Positions 1,321 to 33,962 of a stretch of 35,848 nt of DNA are shown one piece after another. Made by a program: the position numbers and the translations under genes. The stretch is taken from contig JALMLS010000428.1 in NCBI GenBank assembly GCA_038496445.1, positions 1 through 35,848 on the forward strand. Direction: 5' to 3'. Under the pieces are notes generated by a model that had not been told where the DNA came from, searched no databases, and saw only the letters and a list, made by a program, of their open reading frames with translations. This stretch comes from Trichosphaerium sp. ATCC 40318 (taxonomy: Eukaryota; Protista; Tubulinea). Within the stretch, counting starts at the first letter, position 1. The number at the start of each line of letters is the position of its first letter.

Positions 1321-1709
1321 TTTACGGTATTATTTTGTTAAAGTTGAACAACAAAACAAGTTAAGGCGTCTTTTGTCAATCCCGGTTACGCCTTAATCTG
1401 CTGTCAGTGTACGGTTCAACCTACTTATATCAATACTAGAAACTCGTGTATGGGAACTACGGTGCTCTCACTTGTCTACAAACAACAATGTCGAGTGCAA
1501 CTCGCGTTTTAAGCATTTAAAAAATCTTTGTACTATCACGTGATGCTTTGTTAATTGCAAGGTAATCGATTTTATTTAAAAGAATTTGTTTCGCTTTTAA
1601 TGTTCCACGTAGAATTCTTGAATAAACTAAGCAATCGTTGCCGTTTCTTTGCTTTTTTTTTTTTTCGCAAGACTTTGTGTCACTTAACACTATTTCAGGT
1701 TTAGAGTCG
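1321..1709. promoter_or_regulatory. Probable bidirectional promoter between the EEP gene and DHX15, containing the palindrome ATCACGTGAT (1535-1544)
   Basis: Head-to-head start codons about 390 bp apart with an E-box palindrome in the middle. Function is inferred. Confidence 0.4.
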
Positions 1710-5129
<3,420 letters not shown>

Positions 5130-5884: not shown

Positions 5885-6993
5885 TTAGGCTGCTTCTTTC
5901 CATACAATAATGTTGTCACGTAGAATTTGAAGAATTTTGGTTGCATCTGTGTATGTATCATCACTTACTTTATCAAGGTAACTTATACCATCATCAACAG
6001 CTTTCTGTGCCATTTCAATAGCTTCATTCTTATTCCCAATATAAAATTGTTTTCCGCTTTGTTTCAAATGAAAAGAAAGAACCATAGGAAGAACAGGAAC
6101 CATCTCTGAAATACAACCATAAATCTCATTTAATTCTTGGATAGATTGTTGTGTATATTCTTCTCTATCATTATCACGTGATATCTCAATGATGTATCGA
6201 TAGTAATTACTCTTAAGAGATGTGTAGGTTAATATACTTTGGTTGTCTTGACCTTCAATTGAGAGAATAGTGTCATGTGCTTTCATGGCACGTTTGCTTG
6301 CTTCTATGAGTTTACCTTCTATTTTCTTTCTGTAGGCTCTTACAACACGCACTTGCGATTCTTCTGAGTTAATAACTGCCTTACTAAAACCACATTACAT
6401 TAAGCATTGGTACAGAGAGGGGCAGCATCGCTTTTGAAACAGTTTCGACAATTACGAAATTATTAATTTTTGATATTTACATGATTTCGAGAATCTTTGA
6501 GACGTTTTTACTCACCTCAGAACCGGCTTAACCTTCAATAGCTATTATAAACATGTAGCTAGTATTCTATAGTTATAGGCACAAAAGTCATTTTGCGATT
6601 CGTTCATGCTGTACCGACGAAAAGTACCGACAGTCAAAGTAATTTTTTTGAAAAAATTAGACTTTTTACAAATAAAAATTTAGGAATTTCTGAAACTGTC
6701 TCATGCTGCCGCAGAAAACGTACTTTTCTACACCTTGTAAAATTCGCCAGGATGTCCTCAACGCACTTATAACATTAGAAAAGGCAACGGTAACAAGAAT
6801 TCTCTCGTTTTTTGATAATAACTCGCCATCTTCTTTTGCTATGGCCACTAGAGCTTCTATAGCCTCTACCATATCCTCATACTGCTCCGACTAATTTAAA
6901 ATGAGTAATTATCGTAATCTATTTAAAAAGCCGTTTAACCTCATCAGCAATACTTGCTTGGTACAATGCTGCTTCCCGTGCATTCATCGACAT
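5885..6993 (-). CDS. Divergent 14-3-3-like protein (about 3 exons)
   Basis: MSMNAREAALYQASIADE|SEQYEDMVEAI...LSKNERILVTVAFSNVISALRTSWRIL...YRKKIEGKL...KSNYYRY...YTDATKILQILRDNIIVW is colinear with 14-3-3 helices, including the LxxRDNxxxW signature. Confidence 0.9.
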
Positions 6994-18500: not shown

Positions 18501-19077
18501 TATTGAAGTCCGTACTAAAGTACTTTGGGGTACTATCCTACAAGGTAAGGAGCCAACCTCTCCAATATGAAAAACAGTCAATTACGTTTTTGAGAACTCG
18601 ACTAAATTTCCTTTGTACAGGTGGTGCTGGTGCCGAATATTATTTTGGATACCAACAACCTCATAACGATCTTAACTTGGAAGACTTCAGGTCACGTGAT
18701 TCTGTTTGGGGATGGACAAAACACGCCATTGATTTTATGGCTGGGTACGAAAAAAAAACCAAAACTATCACATTTGCATGGTCTCTTACTGTATTTCTAG
18801 CATACCTTTCGTTAGTATGGCTCCATGTGCCAACAACCTTGGAAGCGGTTACTGCTTTAAGAACTCTAACTTCTTCGTTGTATCTATGCCTACTGGCGGT
18901 ACACTGAATGTTAGTACAGAGCTCGGAACTGGAACATGGGTTGTACAATTCTTTAACCCAAGAAATGGCGCTTATAACTCTGTTCAAACAATTAGCGGTT
19001 CATCAATAACAGCACCTGATTCACAAGATTGGGTAGCTATTGTAAAACCACAAGGTTATAATATCCCTACAAACTAG
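15534..19077 (+). CDS. Secreted multidomain protein: signal peptide, beta-rich domain, CBM6, DUF5060 plus putative glycoside-hydrolase-like domain (bacterial type); many introns
   Basis: [15 protein letters not shown] signal; CBM6 motifs EAEDF...[11 protein letters not shown]...TGGWQTWQT...LNLNWI; [77 protein letters not shown] resemble bacterial DUF5060-containing proteins (recognised from memory, not searched). Confidence 0.82.
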
Positions 19078-20599
19078 ACTACACTAGAATCAAATACAAT
19101 GCAATAAATTTTTAGTCAATTCGAAAAAAAAAGTTATCCCTTTATCTCCTGACTCAAGACTAGAACCTAGCACATAGAAAATTATTTACGAATGTCCTTA
19201 CGGAATCAGTATACGCTATAAAAACATCAATTTTGTAAACATCTATGTTGAGTAGTAGTTGTATTGCCGTCGTTTTAGGCTAGAAAACTCTCATTTTTGC
19301 AACACTAAATACTTTGCAGCACCGCTCTGTCTTAAAAAGTGAATACTTGCAACAGTGTACTTTACCATAAAGCGATACTGACGCAGGAACGTGTCAGGAA
19401 ACGTTGCCTATACCCTGTCATAGGGCAACGAATGGTAATGTTGTCGTGAAACATAAATACAGCTTTCGGTTGTAACCTTAAGGCAAAGTAACAAAATTGT
19501 AATAAATCAGCATAGGAAGAAAACTTGATGCTCCCCCTTATTGTTACACGTTGAACAAAACAGAAACAATACTCCACAATATGAAGCCTGCTTCATTGAA
19601 TGTTGTTTAAGTCTTTAGTTTTTTTCTTGTTTTAAAGAGATATGGTTGACCTTGAATGGCGGGTAGTGCAACACCATGTAGAATTGCAACAAGGATTTGT
19701 AAAAACAGGCAAGCCTGCAACGGTACAAGAAGACCAAAATAAAAAATTAGCATAAACGGTTTCGTGCTTTGGTAGGAATAACACCAACAGCGTTTAAACT
19801 GCTGAGAACAGATACACCACTTGATTTTAGCCAATAGGCCGAGAAGTGGCCTATAATAATCTCAACCAACCCCTACCTAAATTTTTTTCAATGAAGAAAA
19901 ATGTCCAATGCACCAAAAATAACAAAAAGCACGTGTTCAATCAACACACGCTGTCCAACTTCAAAGTGGTTTTTGCTTAAAACTAACATTGCTAGCACAA
20001 TCATACTATACATGATGTATCAAATGTCAAATAAACACTGGATTACCACGTGTATTTGAAAGCGGTTATGCGTATTTTTATTCAAAGACATCTAACCAAC
20101 AATTACATACCATTAATTGCATACAAGATATAATTCCTCTAATAACCAAAAACGCGAAGCTACAAACTTGGCCCAAAATGTTGTAAGCTAATTCAAAAGT
20201 AAACTACTGCTAGCTTTATTAGGACTGTTCATTATTCCTAAACAGAAGTCGTAACTACTCTACCACCAATCAGCTGTTACAGTTCTAACACTCTCAGTTG
20301 ACTTTCTTCTATCAACTAACCAAGGAATACTAACTAAGACGATGTTGGGAGGAAGGCAAAATATCTTGTGGCTCTAGCGCAGTGCCAAGCATTTGTTATA
20401 TGATACAAGAACACTTGGAAAATAAAAGAAAGGTTGTTGCAGTTTTGAAAACAAATTGAAAAGGAAATTTTTGGGTGGGATGTGGGTGATTGCTGCTCGC
20501 CATGTTGTTTAAGCTTTGTCGGTAGTTGTTGTTTTATACGAAGTCAACTGAAGTTTACCCAAACGTTTGTAACGGAGTAAAACACGTATACAGCCATGA

Positions 20600-21090
20600 A
20601 ACTAGTATCTATGTGTCAATTCTTCTTTGACTCCTTTGTCTTCTGCTATTGCTCCTTTGGACAATGAGATGCTATAAGCCTGTGAGCGCAAGTGTTCTTA
20701 AACCTGCATCTGTTATTGATTTACAAGACCGCAAGCAAATAGTATGTACACCTGCCAATACCTTTAAGCCTTCATCTATTACATTTGTGTTTGACAAATT
20801 AATCTTATGTGCACCTGCCAATGATGCAATGCCATAATCTGTTTGATAAATCAATCTAATGTACACCTATCAAAGTGTAAGATATTGCAAGAACTATCAG
20901 ACCCGTAATATCTTGTCAGTTTTTGCTGTCAACTAAATCACATTTCAAACGTTGTATCTGCTATTTCTGTAAGAACTAACATAACTTGCAAGACTGTCAG
21001 ATCTGACTAAACACGAAAACCAACAGCCACAAACAACAAAAAATTTGCACAGTTTTGCAAACTTGAATGATACGGACAATATTAATTACA
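20600..21090 (-). pseudogene. Relic of the F-box/LRR family (paralogue of 27584-28474 and 31147-32466)
   Basis: GIASLAGAHKINLSNTNVIDEGLKVLAGVHTICLRSCKSITDAGL carries the same repeat consensus; the surrounding frames are broken. Boundaries are approximate. Confidence 0.75.
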
Positions 21091-21323
21091 AGGCATGTGA
21101 TATTGCAATAACATACGTATCTGCATTTACACGCGTCATACGTTTGCCTAGCTGTTTTATCATAGTAACACGTGATAATTCAAAACTTGACTCAATGGGT
21201 TGAAAGGCTTCTAAAATAAAATGCCAACAAAAAATCAATTTATTTATAGTTTGCTTAACACTAGCACTGAGATAGCAAGTCACATACAACATGCATGTGG
21301 TTACTATATAGATATACACTCGC

Positions 21324-21721
21324 TTAATCACATCTATAGCGGGATACTTTCGCATTAGTACCAATCGTCATGAAACCATTATAAGTATTACATCTTCCAG
21401 CACTAGGTGTTCTCTGATTGCATCGTTTACCGCAGTTTTTCTTGCCTGATATGTGGTCATACTATACTTAGAAGTGAGTCGAAAGTTGAACAGCGTAGAC
21501 AATGGAAAAGTGCGTACGCCGTCATAACTCGTTTTAGGGCAAGATCCCCAAATGTCAGAGCAAAAAGTTCCCGAACCTCCCTCAGTTTTTTCATACAGCC
21601 TTGAACACCATTTGCCTATGCACGCTTCTGCCTCTTCGTCATTTCCTGATACAGGACATGCGAACATAAAGACTACAAAAAGAATAGCCAAGGATAGCGT
21701 AGGTAAAGATAAGTTGCTCAT
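21324..21721 (-). CDS. Small secreted cysteine-rich protein (113 aa, 2 exons)
   Basis: Exon 1 at 21721-21518, a 56-nt GTACGC...TATAG intron, exon 2 at 21461-21324 (YDHISGKKNCGKRCNQRTPSAGRCNTYNGFMTIGTNAKVSRYRCD*). Signal peptide plus 8 Cys in the mature part. Confidence 0.7.
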
Positions 21722-23509
21722 TGTGAGTGATAATAATTTTTTGAGTGAAAAGGTGTAGAGAGTTTTTCAAGAGTTTGTCCGATGTAATCCCGATTTCACA
21801 TAACACGAAACTACACGACTCTCACGACTGTACACGAGGACCACAAACCTAAGGCAAAGGTTGCCTGTTGAAATAAGCCAAAACTGGTACAGCGAACAAC
21901 GTCAGCTGCCTGTTGTATTAAGGAATGTAACAACATCCGCAAAAAAGGTTGTATCTTTTTGTAGCACGTAGAGTATGTAGTAACTTTGGACATACAAAAG
22001 AGACCAACGCCTATTTGAGCGCTATAACCCAATCTTAATTGTCAACTTACAATGGCATTGCTTTTATTTACATTCCACGGATAGTATGCACCACAGTATG
22101 TATAATTATGTTAATCAAGCAAAGGGTGAATCGTGCAAAACATACAGAGTTGACTAGCACAATGTGAATGTATCACATGAGAAAGCACCTAGGCTAAACA
22201 ATAATTCGACAAAATGCGTGGTATGTCGCATAAGGTCCTGTCATACTCTAATATAGTGTACACACGTTCTGTATTGTCAGGAAGTTTTTTTCATTGGTGG
22301 GAAGAGCGTTTGTCAATTGTACTTAAAAAGAGTCAAAGCTGGCTTGTGGTTTATTTTTGTGATTGCTTTATTATGTACAGATGTACTAGATGAGGTGTTG
22401 AAGGCCTTGGCAAGTGTGTAACCTATTAAAACCCAGCGTCAATCAAAAAATGCGAGCTAGAAAAATGTACAGTCAATATAGAAATACTACATACACTACC
22501 TCTCTACTTTCGCTACCTTTTAGTAGCACTGTACTGGTAGTTTGCTCTCGCTTGCAAACGCCAAAGTGCCTTAAAATAGGCCCATACTATAGGTTGCTTT
22601 GTTGATTTGTAGTAGCAATAAATAGAGCATCAAACAACGACAGTAAGTAGTCGAGGAATTCGTGATTCATAGCAAGTCTCTGGTTTTTATCAATGGCAAG
22701 TATTTGCAAAATGCTATCAAGAAAAGGTGAGACTTTTTTTGTTAGAAAATAGTTGTTCTCAACTTGCTGATTATGAACGCGTGATATGTCCGAAGAGAAA
22801 AATCAAGCCGTTATATACCTACAGGCACTGATACGTGGATTACTTGTAAATATATAAACCGAGAAGGTTGAGAAATAGAGTTGTACATTAGAACATGACC
22901 AACTTTTTTTGTGGGATTCCAAAGGATAATGCGTAAATGTTAATACCCGCCCAATACTTCTATGTGTAAACGAAAGCCTAAACTGGGAGTTATCCAGCAG
23001 TGCATTATCATTTGAATACGAAGGACTAAGACCAACTCGCAACCTTATCACGACAGCAACAGGATAGCATAGTTGTATAAAAAATTTCCCAGTGTCCTTT
23101 TCTTAAACTCACATACGTGGTGTCAAAACACTTCCAGTACCTCCCTTTTTCGATTTTTTTATTTGACATTGTGTTGTAAATAAATCCTTGACGCTCGCTC
23201 TGCGCTCAAGCTATCTGTCAGGGACAGATATGTTCCTTTCCTCCCAAAGATCATCTAGCTGTCTCAGGTTGGTTGATTGAGGATGTGGTCTAAACACAGA
23301 CATAATTTCAAAGGGAAAAGCTATGTACGAATAAAATTTTAAGACGTAAAATGCGTACTTAAGTTTTTTTGCCAGGCAAAAACAAACTGCTTACTTTTTT
23401 CACAATGCAAGTTAAACTAACCATTTTTTATTAAACTTATACACAAGTACTGGCGCTGATCAAGTCAAAAATCCACCCAAAGCCTAGGTACTTTGTTATT
23501 CGCAATGCC

Positions 23510-25187
23510 TTAATAACCAGCCACATCTAGAGCTCTGGACACCATCACACTTTTGAAAACATCACATAAGTTGACAGAGAAGTGAAGAATTGAGTAGTAA
23601 TGAAAATATGAGTATGCTGTAGTCATTGTGCTGCTTCCCTCTTCATCTGTGACTGCTCCTTCATACATATGAGAAGTGAATAATAGCCGTAGGTACTCAA
23701 AAATAGAGTCCATTGTGTCTAGAAAGAAAGCGTTAGTTAAAGAGCTTGGTCCATCTCAAAATTCAAATAGAAAAGGGGTAAAGGATTACCTTCAGGGCAA
23801 TCTGGGAACTTCTCACAGAACTCACTAGGTACTATATGGTCATCTTTGTAGATAAATATAGCCATACTACAACCTTTAGTTTTATAAAGGATATTACACC
23901 ACAACGAGTACTCATGTATTGATCTGTGTAGTTTTGTGCCGAAGATTGGGTCATGTACACGGTATTCACCAAGTACAATTAGTTGTACATTATTAAACAA
24001 TCGTTTCCGTATGCAAGTTTATCTTGTATGACGTTTTGGAATAGTGTGTGAGACATTGAAGGGTACATAGTCAACCTAGGAAAAATATAAAGACCAATCA
24101 CGTGACAGTTTTTTTTTTTTCCACTTGTACATCATATCAGTACTTGACATATTACTAATATATTCAAGAGGTTTATCAGTATGTAGGAGTGTACAACACA
24201 TGTTTTCAATATGTTCTGGTATCACAGTGTATTCTTTATCCAGTATCATTGAAGCAGCTTTTTCGAAACTATCACATTGAGATTGTTAGTACTCCAAGAA
24301 AGGACAAAAAACCTGTACTATTTGGCTCGCTCATCATCTTCAACATCAATTGTTTCAAGGCCTTCAGCAATCAGTTCTTGAGCAATTGAGGACTTAATTA
24401 CCTCTGCACATTTACTCTAGGTATCACATGTAAGTTGTGGTGTAAGTGTAAGTTGTGGTATAAGCTAACAAAGGTGTTCTTCGATACCTCAGGATTGTCT
24501 TTTGATGCCTTCAAAGCAACAGAAAGTGTGTATTTTTGAATACATCTCTTGAACGGAGAAAAGTCTGGTGCCACTATTGACCTTGCAACACCTCCCACGC
24601 ACATGTGCATATTGTTTCCAAGGAAAAGGACATTCATTCGATACTGTTTTTTTTCCCTTTTAAGTATAGAGGAGATTTTTCGGTCAGGTAAGTTTTGATG
24701 TTTCATTCTTTTCTTCATGCGGTTTGTGTGCTTTCGCTTGGAGAGTGTCTTCTGAACCGTGTATGGATTCAAACCGGCTTTATAATACTTGTTTAAGAAT
24801 GCATATGTGCTAGCTCTGCTCTTGATAATCAACAGTAAGTCATAAACAGATAATAGTACAGCGTATCAAAAAATAGACCCAACTTACTCTACTGACTTCG
24901 AATAGCCACGTGAACTGACTCTGGCAATACTTCGAATACGGCTTTGCTGTTTGTGATATAGCAAGAATACATTTGGCATCTAGAAAGCTTATCACGTGCC
25001 ATACAATCTCGGTTGGGAGCTCTAAAGAACAAAGGAAAAAGGTTATTTCAAACATCAGAGAAGTTGTTGGAATCTCATTCATTACCTGTGAAGTTAGTGA
25101 ATGTCGTCACCTTGGCGTTTATGGAAGTGATGGCATTAGTAGAATTGGATCCACGCTTCTTGTATCGGAGTGATACGAATGGTTCAT
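23510..25187 (-). pseudogene. F-box fused to a degenerate heterotrimeric G-protein alpha-like domain; intron-containing, with a stop and frameshifts
   Basis: F-box ELPTEIVWHVISFLDAKCILAISQTAK, then G-alpha-colinear blocks: DRKISSILKREKKQYRMNVLFLG; LDKEYTVIPEHI; LGEY...TKLHRSIHEYSLWC...SMAIFIYKDD; FCEKFPD; IFEYLRLLF; DVFKSVMVSRALDVAGY*. In-frame TAG at 24318-24320 and apparent frameshifts near 25150, 24260-24300 and 23985. Confidence 0.68.
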
Positions 25188-25901
25188 TGTGAGAGACGAT
25201 GTATTGATGAACACTAAAAGTTCAAACGGTTTAATGTTTGCCCCATTCACAAGAAAACTGTAAAACCGCAAAAAACGCAACCAATGCGTTTGTTGTAGCT
25301 TTGAGAACAAAAAACGAGCGATAAGCTTCACATACTGTTGACATGCTTCCAATATAGATACAGACGCAAAATTAGGTCGTTTACTGACCCGCCAAGCCAA
25401 TATATCTTCAAAAACCTGTTTTTTCTAAACAAACGGCTTAGATCCAAGTCTAAAGTGCCAAAACAACCTTTCGCAATACCAAGATGTCGTACGCTTCCAT
25501 TACTTGACTGTGGTTTATGGTATTGACTTTATTTGTACACAAGATTTACTACAATTCTACTTCAATTTTAAGTTTTGTCTTTAAGGGTATTTGCGGCCCT
25601 TTGTAAATGCTTTATCACGTGATAAGCTTTGTTCGTAGAGTATATCGCACGTGTTCCTATAAAACATAAGTTACATTTATCGTACCGTTAAGGGAATGTA
25701 GTATCAACATCAAACTACCACGCAATACGTTCAACAACCTTGTAATTGTTGCTCTACCTTTGTGTGACTGGTGCCAAAATATAAGTTCATTGTTTTCACA
25801 CTGACACATTTGTAGCCACTCACACAACGTCGTGGTGTAGTAGAAATTGATCCGGATTTACTGTAAATTTTCAAGAGAAACACGTTTTTATTGTTTTGAT
25901 C

Positions 25902-27583: not shown

Positions 27584-28474
27584 CTACCTACATACTGTAA
27601 CACCTCTTTGTGCCAAAGCAATTAGACACTTGTTTGTAATATTACAATTTTGTAATTGTAATACTTTGACGCCGGTAAGTTGATCAATCCAATAATCACT
27701 GGCACTAGTATACGATAATTTAACTTCATATGCGTCTGATATATCTTTCATACAGGATCCAGTTACTCCCAAACACCAAGATATATCAATAGTGTGCACA
27801 CCAGCAAGAGCTGATATACCTTTGTCGGTCACGTTTGTGCTACATAGGTATATTTTATGTACACCTGCCAATGATGAGATACCTTTATCTGAGATGCGTT
27901 TACAACCACTTAAATCGATTGTATGTACACCAGCTAATTTATGCAGTATGTCATCTGTAAGTATTTTCGATGATGGTAAACTAATACTCGGTATTCCAGT
28001 AAGAAAAAGTAACGTCAATTGATAATACCCTACATCTATCAGACAAATTGTTTTAAGATTTTTAACAAGTGGTCCTATTCCGAAATCTGTAATGCGTTTA
28101 CAATCTTGTAGTGTTAAAGATTGAACACCAGTAGCACGGTGTAACCCTCTATCGGTGATACCATGATTTGTACGAAGGAATAGCCTGCGAACACCTGAAA
28201 TTAGAGAAAGATCTGAGTCTGTTGCTTCTATGAAATCTCCAAAGTATATTTCCGTGTTTATTAGTAGTGGACTTCCTGAAAGACGTGAACAGTCTGATCT
28301 TGATTTAACAGAGATTCGTTTGTATCCCACGTGGTGTAGTATTATGGATGATAATCGTTTACAGCTTTGAGAAGCGGGGAATCTATAACTGCGGTCTAAA
28401 AAATCAAGCAAGTGCGCCAGTATCTCTGTCGGTATGTCTAGAAGTTCTATAGTTTCCCGTTCGTCTTTACTCAT
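27584..28474 (-). CDS. F-box/leucine-rich-repeat protein (296 aa, intronless)
   Basis: LLDIPTEILAHLLDFLD F-box, then GVHTIDLSGCKRISDKGISSLA-type repeats. Confidence 0.9.
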   Translation of the reverse strand: MSKDERETIELLDIPTEILAHLLDFLDRSYRFPASQSCKRLSSIILHHVGYKRISVKSRSDCSRLSGSPLLINTEIYFGDFIEATDSDLSLISGVRRLFLRTNHGITDRGLHRATGVQSLTLQDCKRITDFGIGPLVKNLKTICLIDVGYYQLTLLFLTGIPSISLPSSKILTDDILHKLAGVHTIDLSGCKRISDKGISSLAGVHKIYLCSTNVTDKGISALAGVHTIDISWCLGVTGSCMKDISDAYEVKLSYTSASDYWIDQLTGVKVLQLQNCNITNKCLIALAQRGVTVCR

Positions 28475-31146: not shown

Positions 31147-32466
31147 ATGAACGCGCGTGAACAGCAAACGATAGAAAGTGGTTCAAATCACCAAACCTTC
31201 GACCTAATCGCGCTGCCAGTTGAGGTTATTGTGCATATTCTCAAACAAGGGACGTATACGCTTCGTACAGCCCAAACATGCCATCTTTTGCGAGATATTG
31301 TTCACAACTACGTTGGATACGAAAACATTGTCGTAATGAACGACAGAGAGCTGACTAGACTTTCGGGAAGCCCTCTACTTCAAAATACAACAATAACTTT
31401 ATCTAATATTGACGTCCATGCTACTGACAGCAACATGCTTTTACTTTCAGGCGTCCATACTATTAATCTTTTTTGTTCTGAAATAACAGATAGGGGTATT
31501 AAAGCATTATCAGGCGTGAACAACATTAATTTGTCAGATTGTCGAAGAATTACAGACAAGGGCATCAAACTATTATCTGGAGTACACGTGATTAATCTAC
31601 GGAATACAGACGTTACAGACAATGGATTAAAGTCACTGAAAGGTGTACATACTATAAACCTAGCACATTGTAAAGGAATAACAGATGAAGGCGTCAAAAA
31701 GCTTAAGGGTGTTCATACAATTGATTTAACTAATACAAGTGTTTCTGATGAATGTTTAAACGTGTTGAAAGGTGTACATACTATAGACTTAACTTGGTGT
31801 AAAAATATAACAGATGAGGGTATCAAGTTACTGAGCGGTGTGCATAAAATCCGTTTGTTTGGAACTAATGTTACAGGCAATGGTTTGAAGGCATTGGCAG
31901 GCGTACGTACGATCACATTACCTCATAAGCACATCACAGATGATGATTTGAAACCATTGAAAGGTGTCCATACCATTGATTTGGGTCAGTGCGTATTAAT
32001 TACAGATAAGAGCATCAAAACATTGTCTGGCGTACATATGATTGATCTACACTACACAGCAGTTACTGATGATGGTATCAAGGCACTAGCTGGTGTACAT
32101 ACTATTGATCTAGCATCAACAAAAGTTACAGGTGAATGTTTAAAGGCATTACAAGGAGTGCATGAAATTAACTTATCTCACACGAAAATTACAGATGATC
32201 ATTTGAAGTATCTAGCTTCTGCTCATACAGTCAATATCTTCGACTGTAAGCAAGTTACAGACTTGGGTATTGCAGAACTTGTTGAAGTTCATATTCTTAA
32301 TATTGATTCATGTTCAAAAGTAAAAGGTGAGAGCTTGTGTACACTCTCATATTTAAAGGAATTGAAACATAGTAGTACTGTCAACAAAGATATCATTTAT
32401 GATTTGAAAAAAATAGGTGTAGAAGTGTACCTTGTAGAACGTGGTGTCTATATTTATACTGATTAA
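31147..32466 (+). CDS. F-box/leucine-rich-repeat protein (439 aa, intronless)
   Basis: LIALPVEVIVHIL F-box; about 13 short LRRs; shares the RLSGSPLLxNTxI linker with 27584-28474. Confidence 0.92.
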   Translation: MNAREQQTIESGSNHQTFDLIALPVEVIVHILKQGTYTLRTAQTCHLLRDIVHNYVGYENIVVMNDRELTRLSGSPLLQNTTITLSNIDVHATDSNMLLLSGVHTINLFCSEITDRGIKALSGVNNINLSDCRRITDKGIKLLSGVHVINLRNTDVTDNGLKSLKGVHTINLAHCKGITDEGVKKLKGVHTIDLTNTSVSDECLNVLKGVHTIDLTWCKNITDEGIKLLSGVHKIRLFGTNVTGNGLKALAGVRTITLPHKHITDDDLKPLKGVHTIDLGQCVLITDKSIKTLSGVHMIDLHYTAVTDDGIKALAGVHTIDLASTKVTGECLKALQGVHEINLSHTKITDDHLKYLASAHTVNIFDCKQVTDLGIAELVEVHILNIDSCSKVKGESLCTLSYLKELKHSSTVNKDIIYDLKKIGVEVYLVERGVYIYTD

Positions 32467-32810: not shown

Positions 32811-33962
32811 TTAATAGAACAGTACATCAATAAAAAGCTTGTGCCATGATTTACTATACTTCTTTTGAAGTACACCATTCATAAAATAGTACTTTGATCT
32901 CAATTTACCATTATCATACCAAAGATATCTCTTTCCTTGTAGTTTATCTTCAACATAAAAACACTTTTCTTTCAAGTTACCATTTTCATACCACCACTTC
33001 TTCTCTCCTTCAAGCTTACTCTTGACAAAATTAGATCGACTCATTACTCTACCGTGATAATAATAGCATGTTTGAGTTCCTTCTATTCTACCTTTGACAT
33101 AAGAACACGTGCTCATCAACTGACCATTGAAATACCAAGTCTTTTTCTCTCCTTCTATTTTGCCATTAACGTAATTGCAATGCTCTTTAATTTGACCATT
33201 ACTGTAGTAGCATATTTTCTCTCCTTCAAGTTTACCATTATGATAATTCCTTTCAAACACGTGACCACTCCTATACCACTCTGTATGTTTACCATCTCGT
33301 ATACCGTTGATATAATACCCTTGCCTTGACAATTTACCATCCCAATGCCATCGTGTGTACTCTCCTTCTTTTTTACCTTTTACGAAGAAACACGTCTCTT
33401 CTATTTGTCCGTTATAATACCACTGCTCGAGTTTGCCATCAAGTTCGCCATTGGCAAAGCGAGTATGTCGGTGTAATGAACCGTTACTGTACCACTTTTT
33501 ATACTCTCCTTCTCGCTTATCGTTGATGTAATGACAGTGTTCTTTTAAGGTCCCATTTCTGTGCCATTTCTTAAACTCTCCTTCTTGCTTTCCGTTGACA
33601 TAAAAACTCTTCTTTAGTTGACCGTTCTTGTACCACTTCTTGATCTTGCCTTGTAGTTTATCATTGACGAAATACCCTTGTTCTCTCAATTGACCACTGT
33701 GGTTATACTTCAACCACTTGCCCGTCTTTTTCATATCATAGTTATACCGTGTTGACATTGCTGCATGTTTTGAAAGCAGAGGCCATTTTAAATAGACTTC
33801 GGGATCTAAATCGCAAATATCAAGCTGTATCTCTGCCGGAAGGCTAAATAGGTAGCAACCGCGATGAGCACTTGATGTTATTGAGGTTACAGATTTACTC
33901 TAGCGATGATAGTTAGACAATTATAAATAGTAAGAATTTAATAGTACCCGCTTTGATGACAT
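32811..33962 (-). CDS. F-box + MORN-variant repeat protein (2 exons)
   Basis: MSSKR, then a 48-nt intron (GTACTA...CTAAC...CTAG), then SKSVT...YLFSLPAEIQLDICDLD (F-box-like), continuing in frame into the tracked ORF with about 12 EGExKxWYxNGxLxxxxxYxNGK repeats. Confidence 0.88.

Follow-up and report, generated by a model that had tools for sequence, protein, structure and literature searches.

A broken copy of a protist gene family that probably joins an F-box to an eroded, G-alpha-derived pseudo-GTPase domain

Can an F-box protein carry, as its C-terminal region, a descendant of a heterotrimeric G protein's alpha subunit (G-alpha) that lost its nucleotide-binding motifs before the gene itself was broken? 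The question is raised by contig JALMLS010000428.1 of Trichosphaerium sp. ATCC 40318, analysed here over positions 1 to 35,848 (the window), where an earlier note made from the letters alone had placed an F-box exon fused to a catalytically dead G-alpha-like domain. Our answer, to which we give a probability of about 70%, is that the window holds one broken copy of a family that joins an F-box to an eroded, G-alpha-derived pseudo-GTPase domain. The genome assembly amounts to 70 Mb in 642 contigs, the window's contig being C319 in the naming of paralogues used below; the window is AT-rich, with a G+C content of about 37%.

The gene lies on the minus strand, from 25500 to 23510, with nine exons and 1445 coding bases. 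Exon borders were set from the open frames, from a DNA alignment of eight paralogues and from a more distant copy on contig C56, as follows.

25468-25500, minus strand: exon 1, ATG at 25498-25500, 11 codons, kept in all paralogues including the C56 copy (about 50% identical), GT donor after it
25336-25415, minus strand: exon 2, part of the N-terminal head, in frame and open in all copies, GT-AG borders
25086-25213, minus strand: exon 3, remainder of the head of about 80 residues, ending in phase 1
25022-25085, minus strand: intron 3, 64 nt, GTAATG...TTTAG, GT-AG in eight of eight aligned copies
24888-25021, minus strand: exon 4, putative F-box, LPTEIVWHVISFLD...
24488-24820, minus strand: exon 5, post-F-box 'KYY..NP' motif and basic linker, followed by the counterpart of the G-alpha N-terminal helix and beta1
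24590-24625, minus strand: P-loop remnant in exon 5, FLGNNMHMCVGG, at the place of G-alpha LLGAGESGKS
24319-24416, minus strand: exon 6, at the expected place of the helical domain, similarity not detectable
24125-24268, minus strand: exon 7, equivalent of alphaF, linker 2, switch I and beta2-beta3
24076-24124, minus strand: intron 7, 49 nt, GT-AG, with an A12 run whose length varies between copies
23790-24075, minus strand: exon 8, switch II remnant, then equivalents of beta4, alpha3, beta5 and alphaG
23980-23981, minus strand: TA insertion in exon 8, making TAA (23979-23981) at codon 349, with the frame shifted afterwards
23719-23789, minus strand: intron 8, 71 nt, GTAATC...ACTAAC...TAG, GT-AG in eight of eight copies, in which its length is 50-88 nt
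23510-23718, minus strand: exon 9, equivalents of alpha4, beta6 and alpha5, hypervariable, stop at 23510-23512

Introns 1 to 8 measure 52, 122, 64, 67, 71, 50, 49 and 71 nt, and all eight are GT-AG in the window copy and in the copies on C375 and C187. In the five C133/C453 copies, GT-AG borders stand at the aligned positions of seven introns; the intron-7 donor is at another, unmapped position there, displaced because the end of exon 7 differs in these copies. Between subfamilies, intron 3 differs by indels of 5, 2 and 8 nt. The boundary of exon 3 was fixed by the C56 copy, in which a GT-AG intron of 43 nt separates the same exon from the F-box and no ATG stands ahead of the F-box. Two other arrangements, a start at ATG 25082 and a 25-nt intron linking exon 3 to 25085, were dropped because the C56 copy, together with the GG that five paralogues read at the 'donor', places intron 3 at 25085-25022. 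The earlier note had placed the upstream end at 25187 and counted 25022-25085 as the 5' part of the F-box exon; the start is at 25500, with three further coding exons upstream, and the supposed 5' part is intron 3.

We predict a single nine-exon gene in which the F-box exon is spliced to the G-alpha-like exons. Frames fit over all nine exons in the intact copies and the splice sites are conserved; exon 5 contains both the KYY..NP motif and the G-alpha-like N-helix; a sister gene on C78 carries its F-box and KYY motif within one open frame; and the same architecture recurs in four subfamilies with mutual identities of 23-34%. Scans of metagenomes by protein pattern and by the spliced exon 4/5 junction gave no match, in collections that may omit this organism. 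The N-terminal head (25086-25500, exons 1-3) is kept in all subfamilies of the window's family and is absent from the three sister genes described below. No fold is assigned to these 80 residues ahead of the F-box; single exons are too short for classification.

Exon 4 was accepted as a predicted, divergent F-box. Among Pfam profiles it matched PF12937 (F-box-like; E 8.7e-5, 22.7 bits, cut-off 24.3) and PF00646 (F-box; E 6e-4, 20.1 bits, cut-off 20.5), and an F-box match at E<0.01 was obtained for 12 of the 13 family and sister sequences (best 1.7e-5). The expected pattern is present, with an LPxE(I/L) start and a hydrophobic helix pattern of about 40 residues (LPTEIVWHVISFLD...) in which P, E and D are invariant in 13/13 sequences. 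Compared with the Protein Data Bank (PDB), the F-box profile retrieved FBXW7, FBXL2 and FBXW24 as weak matches (E 0.1-0.6). The F-box announced in the earlier note was thus found at 24888-25021 of the minus strand, through Pfam matches below the gathering threshold.

The descent of the remaining exons from G-alpha is well supported because homology is transitive through sister genes; direct similarity does not show it. A profile of exon 8 made from the family only found distant genes in the same genome, on C87 (E 1e-5), C41 (3e-5) and C78 (0.03), which are F-box genes with a less eroded G-alpha-like body.

C87:45500-50500: sister gene
C41:93500-98500: sister gene
C78:89500-94500: sister gene

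In each sister the F-box comes first, followed by 'KYY..NPW', a basic stretch, a beta1-like '(V/I)xxxG' and a block resembling exon 8. The sisters have a full-size helical-domain region, the insert being longer than in the window family, and 'GSKSKY' at the P-loop; those on C41 and C78 retain 'DRI..(Y/F)IPT..DL' at linker 2, a signature which we take to be specific to G-alpha. We take the sisters to bridge the window family to G-alpha.

Exon profiles that included the three sister subfamilies were compared by hhalign with an alignment of 24 diverse G-alphas. Exon 5 aligned its columns 38-70 with G-alpha 8-41 (P 5.9e-4), exon 7 fell on G-alpha columns 150-196 (P 5.6e-5) and exon 8 on columns 212-292 (P 5.7e-4); exon 9 had its best match at columns 339-349 (P 0.16) and exon 6 at a non-colinear place (P 0.24). 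The four placed matches (exons 5, 7, 8 and 9) follow the G-alpha order, and the Fisher combined P over exons 5-9 is 2.1e-8. Column-shuffled queries reached the observed score in 0/150 trials for exon 5, 0/150 for exon 8 and 1/150 for exon 7, and reversed G-alpha profiles gave background-level scores. Run against the PDB (177,635 sequences, with many other GTPases included), the exon 8 profile with sisters had 99 matches at E<=10; the 60 of them listed are all G-alpha, the best (E 8.3e-4) being residues 224-294 of 6oy9_A, a Gt/Gi1 chimera. For the two steps of the bridge, family against sisters gave P 1.9e-12 (exon 8), 3.2e-7 (exon 5) and 0.009 (exon 7), and sisters alone against G-alpha gave 2.1e-4, 2.6e-5 and 1.3e-3, with a hand-computed Fisher sum of about 3e-9.

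The C-terminal region is therefore predicted to derive most likely from G-alpha (PF00503). Three stretches are colinear with it: the N-helix with beta1; alphaF with linker 2 and switch I; and beta4 with alpha3, beta5 and alphaG. Between beta1 and linker 2, at the place of the helical domain, there is an insert. The by-eye pairings of the earlier note fared unequally. Those of the N-helix with beta1 and of FP(D/E) were reproduced by hhalign and HMMER; the pairing of YKDD with NKKD falls inside the aligned region, with a register that differs by about two residues between methods; the C-terminal helix was paired at the right place, without significance (P 0.16). As a whole, the likeness held as a remote and colinear one seen through the sisters; it is far weaker than those pairings implied and includes no direct profile match.

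The region differs from G-alpha in the state of its GTP-binding motifs. At G1 all copies read FLG-x-N-x-HMC-x-GG (GNNMHMCV) and GKS/T is absent; the F, L, G, H, M, C, G and G of this P-loop remnant are invariant in 10/10 aligned copies. The place of DVGGQ reads approximately YPSMS and is nearly invariant in the family. The switch I Arg is aligned with Leu, the counterpart of NKxD is YKDD or IFIY depending on register, and that of TCAT is about SILH, by position only. The P-loop and DVGGQ, whose loss the earlier note had reported, are gone in every copy by alignment, and the other G motifs look lost or substituted. An H-M-C...G-G motif stands at the place of the P-loop in every copy, down to about 50% identity; its invariance looks like a new constraint and not like plain decay. 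The helical-domain region is about half the size of its G-alpha counterpart: the spacing from beta1 to linker 2 is about 70-80 residues in the window family and about 125 in G-alpha-i1. The window family has no N-terminal lipidation site, because the domain stands behind the F-box and the 80-residue head. The substituted motifs are common to intact and divergent copies, so by sequence the family would have been a pseudo-GTPase long before the window copy broke, the order of events that the earlier note had guessed; the copies concerned are the intact C375 and C187 and others down to about 50% identity.

Six-frame searches found at least 16 copies of the family in the 70-Mb genome, with protein identities of 50-100%; a weak match at C17:263608 is unrelated and was set aside. 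The copies are distributed as follows.

Family copies: C319 (window), C375, C378, C187, C281, C453 (two), C133 (four or five), C55, C31, C56 (two) and C509

Those that retain the exons have the same exon order, with the F-box exon immediately upstream of exon 5, and about nine have open frames in every exon examined, up to about 50% protein divergence. Duplicated blocks reach 6 kb at 98% identity and adjoin dispersed repeats. The family is lineage-specific and recently duplicated in this amoeboid protist. The gene is directly followed downstream by two repeats, through which the duplications may have arisen. One, of about 330 bp at 20262-20626, has more than 15 copies at 90-93% identity on many contigs; the other, of about 1-2 kb at about 20870-22850, recurs at 75-94% identity on C111, C68, C17, C565, C152 and C183.

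The ratio of non-synonymous to synonymous divergence (dN/dS) between copies is 0.35-0.79 over the gene, and dS tracks intron divergence. It differs between exons: 0.16-0.28 in exon 4, 0.36-0.71 in exons 1-3, 0.31-0.60 in exon 5 and 0.6-1.9 in exon 9, a rate near neutral. Exon 9 is 45-55% identical between subfamilies, and its dS reaches 0.7-0.85 for some pairs, above the rest of the gene, which suggests either gene conversion that made the 5' exons uniform or a mosaic origin of the 3' end. The F-box exon is constrained, which, with the gene-wide ratio, points to some copies at least being functional. Fast-evolving F-box receptor families show this combination of a constrained F-box and a C-terminal end that runs free.

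Several results weigh against our answer. Both F-box scores are 0.4-1.6 bits below the Pfam gathering threshold. PF00503 had no match at E<=10 in any exon or in a 245-residue frame of the C187 copy (this frame includes the translated introns 7 and 8 and is open because both are stop-free and in frame there), and the same frame, searched by phmmer against 1.84 billion representative proteins, retrieved no G-alpha and no relatives; its single match was a spurious repetitive protein. The window contig is not among the 150 genome matches to PF00503 listed (of 167). Family profiles without sisters, aligned to the G-alphas, gave P of 0.1, 0.062 and 0.003 over the set of exons 8, 5 and 7, and a hand-computed Fisher sum of about 0.002 when exons 6 and 9 were added (overall P 0.003-0.24); of these, exon 7 (P 0.062) fell at the same G-alpha place as with sisters, and the signal is significant only through the three sister subfamilies of the same genome. 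The AlphaFold model of 251 residues of C187, which include the two translated introns, had a predicted local distance difference test score (pLDDT) of 38.8, the input having alignment depth over exon 8 only; Foldseek on this model reached a best E of 0.3, its weak rows including a few Gi chains. Gene-wide dN/dS values of 0.4-0.8 are relaxed, several copies (C453a, C31, C55 and the window copy) are clearly broken, and the joining of the F-box exon to the G-alpha-like exons is deduced only by comparison between copies. The earlier note had proposed profile and structure matching to G-alpha as a check; it succeeded with PDB and hhalign through the sisters and gave no G-alpha with Pfam, while the confidence of the structure model was too low for use.

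These tests would also agree with the C-terminal region being an orphan domain unrelated to G-alpha, its colinear likeness being due to chance or composition. Pfam, phmmer, AlphaFold/Foldseek and family-only PDB profiles, which retrieved nothing relevant, show no G-alpha. Look-alikes in a protein atlas were peptidase-C39-like, with sub-threshold scores, and were disregarded. Against chance or composition, three exon profiles fall at colinear G-alpha places with P from 6e-4 to 6e-5, beating 149 to 150 of 150 shuffles; only G-alpha was present among the PDB matches listed from a set that holds many GTPases; and sisters retain the linker-2 motif presumed to be G-alpha-specific. We consider an orphan domain very improbable.

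The broken copies and relaxed rates could alternatively mean that the whole family is decaying duplicated DNA, now functionless and spread by segmental duplication beside repeats. Copies do lie in 98%-identical 6-kb blocks flanked by dispersed repeats, several have stops or rearrangements, dN/dS rises to 0.7-0.8 in some pairs and to about 1 in exon 9, and the search of the 1.84-billion-protein library, where this organism is represented by at least one cDNA-derived protein (JGI 3300016894), found no family member. However, at least nine copies are open in all exons examined, up to about 50% protein divergence, the F-box exon has a dN/dS of 0.16-0.28 and the splice sites are conserved, which makes general decay highly doubtful.

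The window copy itself is in a different state. Along more than 2.1 kb it matches, at 97-98% identity, C375 and C187, the intact paralogues found by the six-frame genome search, which under the exon model are open for 480 and 479 codons, respectively, each to the terminal stop. Five indels distinguish the three genes: a 3-nt in-frame indel in exon 3, 1-nt indels in introns 5, 7 and 8, and the TA of exon 8. The 1-nt length differences from C187 are located in introns 7 and 8, and the TA is unique to the window copy. The 'few frame lesions' of the earlier note are accordingly introns 7 and 8 plus one true lesion, the TA at 23980-23981. Because this 2-bp insertion truncates the frame at codon 349, the window copy is probably a young pseudogene, barring an assembly error at the TA. 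Such an error in assembly or consensus, or one allele of a heterozygous site, would leave the window copy functional; the TA is the sole lesion among 1445 coding bases, identity to the intact C375 and C378, both of which may be alternative haplotypes, is 98%, and dN/dS between window and C375 is 0.46, a value resting on very few changes. The TA, however, lies outside any homopolymer and therefore is not a typical consensus error, and broken copies also occur elsewhere in the family, so that we regard an intact window gene as the less probable case, if a serious one. Window positions 19000-19500 are 100% identical to C378:12507-13007; on C378 the gene block, 98% identical, stands 6 kb from there. 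The two contigs, C319 and C378, could be alternative haplotypes or differ by a recent tandem event. The window copy being probably dead, its value therefore lies in marking the family and the fast birth and death of its members.

What, then, might the intact members do? They are predicted to be proteins of about 480 residues made of the 80-residue head, the F-box, the 'KYY..NP' motif with the basic linker, and a G-alpha-derived domain of about 330 residues in which the helical domain is shortened and the nucleotide-binding motifs are lost or apparently lost. The F-box would dock on Skp1-Cullin1, the dead G-alpha fold would serve as target-recognition module, and the fast-evolving C-terminal exon would give paralogues different targets; in real G-alphas the C-terminal end is the receptor-contact end. 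From architecture and selection pattern, the most likely role is that of substrate receptor in a Skp1-Cullin1-F-box (SCF) ubiquitin ligase, with the dead G-alpha fold for recognition. We infer that these receptors might be decoy adaptors with the G-alpha-like domain as bait for the partners of G-alpha, as the earlier note had proposed.

An F-box need not deliver substrates: it could shorten the life of its own protein or tether Skp1 outside SCF, so that the dead G-alpha would act as scaffold or would sequester other proteins, its own turnover being regulated. This was proposed for TbFRP, whose F-box is linked to its rapid proteolysis and which shares the order of N-terminal F-box and C-terminal GTPase-like domain (PMC3593210). 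However, a hypervariable C-terminal exon beside a conserved F-box is the pattern expected of a target-recognition end, and most characterised F-box proteins bind substrates by their C-terminal domain, as established knowledge has it; self-turnover seems improbable to us. A larger scheme, in which this amoeba built a ubiquitin layer over an expanded G-protein signalling system, is speculative and on balance unlikely. Dead G-alphas fused to cullin-RING adaptor modules would there dock on the partners of real G-alphas, such as receptors, G-beta-gamma or RGS/GoLoco proteins, and mark these for degradation; each paralogue would have a target of its own, set by the hypervariable receptor-contact end. 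Its context is a genome of 70 Mb with more than 160 G-alpha profile matches. The 167 exon-level PF00503 matches across the genome, most of them above the cut-off, probably represent several dozen G-alpha genes, a very large expansion.

If intact paralogues are SCF adaptors, they would provide a new coupling of heterotrimeric G-protein signalling to protein degradation, and a natural example of a G-alpha fold retained only for its contact surfaces. Partial parallels exist. RhoBTB proteins, in which a Rho GTPase domain is fused to BTB domains, are Cullin-3 adaptors and likewise join an atypical or inactive GTPase-fold domain to a cullin-RING adaptor module; there the module is BTB/Cullin-3 with Rho and is C-terminal, whereas here it is F-box/Cullin-1 with G-alpha and is N-terminal. 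Nematodes and plants have large, fast-evolving, lineage-specific F-box families with C-terminal FTH, DUF38, FBA, LRR or kelch domains. The present family resembles them in its tandem or segmental duplicates, conserved F-box, rapidly diverging C-terminal recognition domain and many pseudogenes, but their C-terminal domains are not G-alpha-derived. The nearest described case, and the only characterised F-box-GTPase fusion that we found, is TbFRP, a FYVE-F-box-Ras-like GTPase of Euglenozoa (trypanosomes) (PMC3593210). It likewise places an F-box N-terminal to a GTPase-fold domain in one protist protein; it has a FYVE and a Ras-like domain, whereas the present family lacks FYVE and its GTPase-like part comes from G-alpha, with the motifs lost. 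The pseudoGTPase domains of p190RhoGAP (PMC5593906) and AAGAB (PMC12490416) are also GTPase-derived domains with degenerate G motifs and presumed protein-protein contacts; these are small-GTPase-like folds confirmed by structure, in contrast to the G-alpha parent and sequence-inferred fold proposed here. A full-text literature search returned no paper in which an F-box protein has a dead, G-alpha-derived domain for its C-terminal module, in agreement with the earlier note, which knew of no characterised example.

The region around the gene is rich in putative ubiquitin-ligase adaptors; two housekeeping genes lie further off in the window.

27584-28474, minus strand: single-exon gene for an F-box and LRR_6 protein
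31147-32466, plus strand: single-exon gene for a 439-residue LRR_6 protein with an F-box-like start
32811-33758, minus strand: single-exon gene for a MORN_2 repeat protein
1638-3644, plus strand: exons of a DEAH-type helicase (Helicase_C), housekeeping
5885-6352, minus strand: exon(s) of a 14-3-3 protein, housekeeping

Elsewhere in the genome, a canonical two-exon G-alpha gene at C56:93799-97461 lies about 8 kb from the F-box/G-alpha-like copy at C56:103879-104969. Its spliced 357-residue product corresponds to a 1329-nt contig in JGI sample 3300016894, and cDNA-like data of this organism have therefore been publicly collected.

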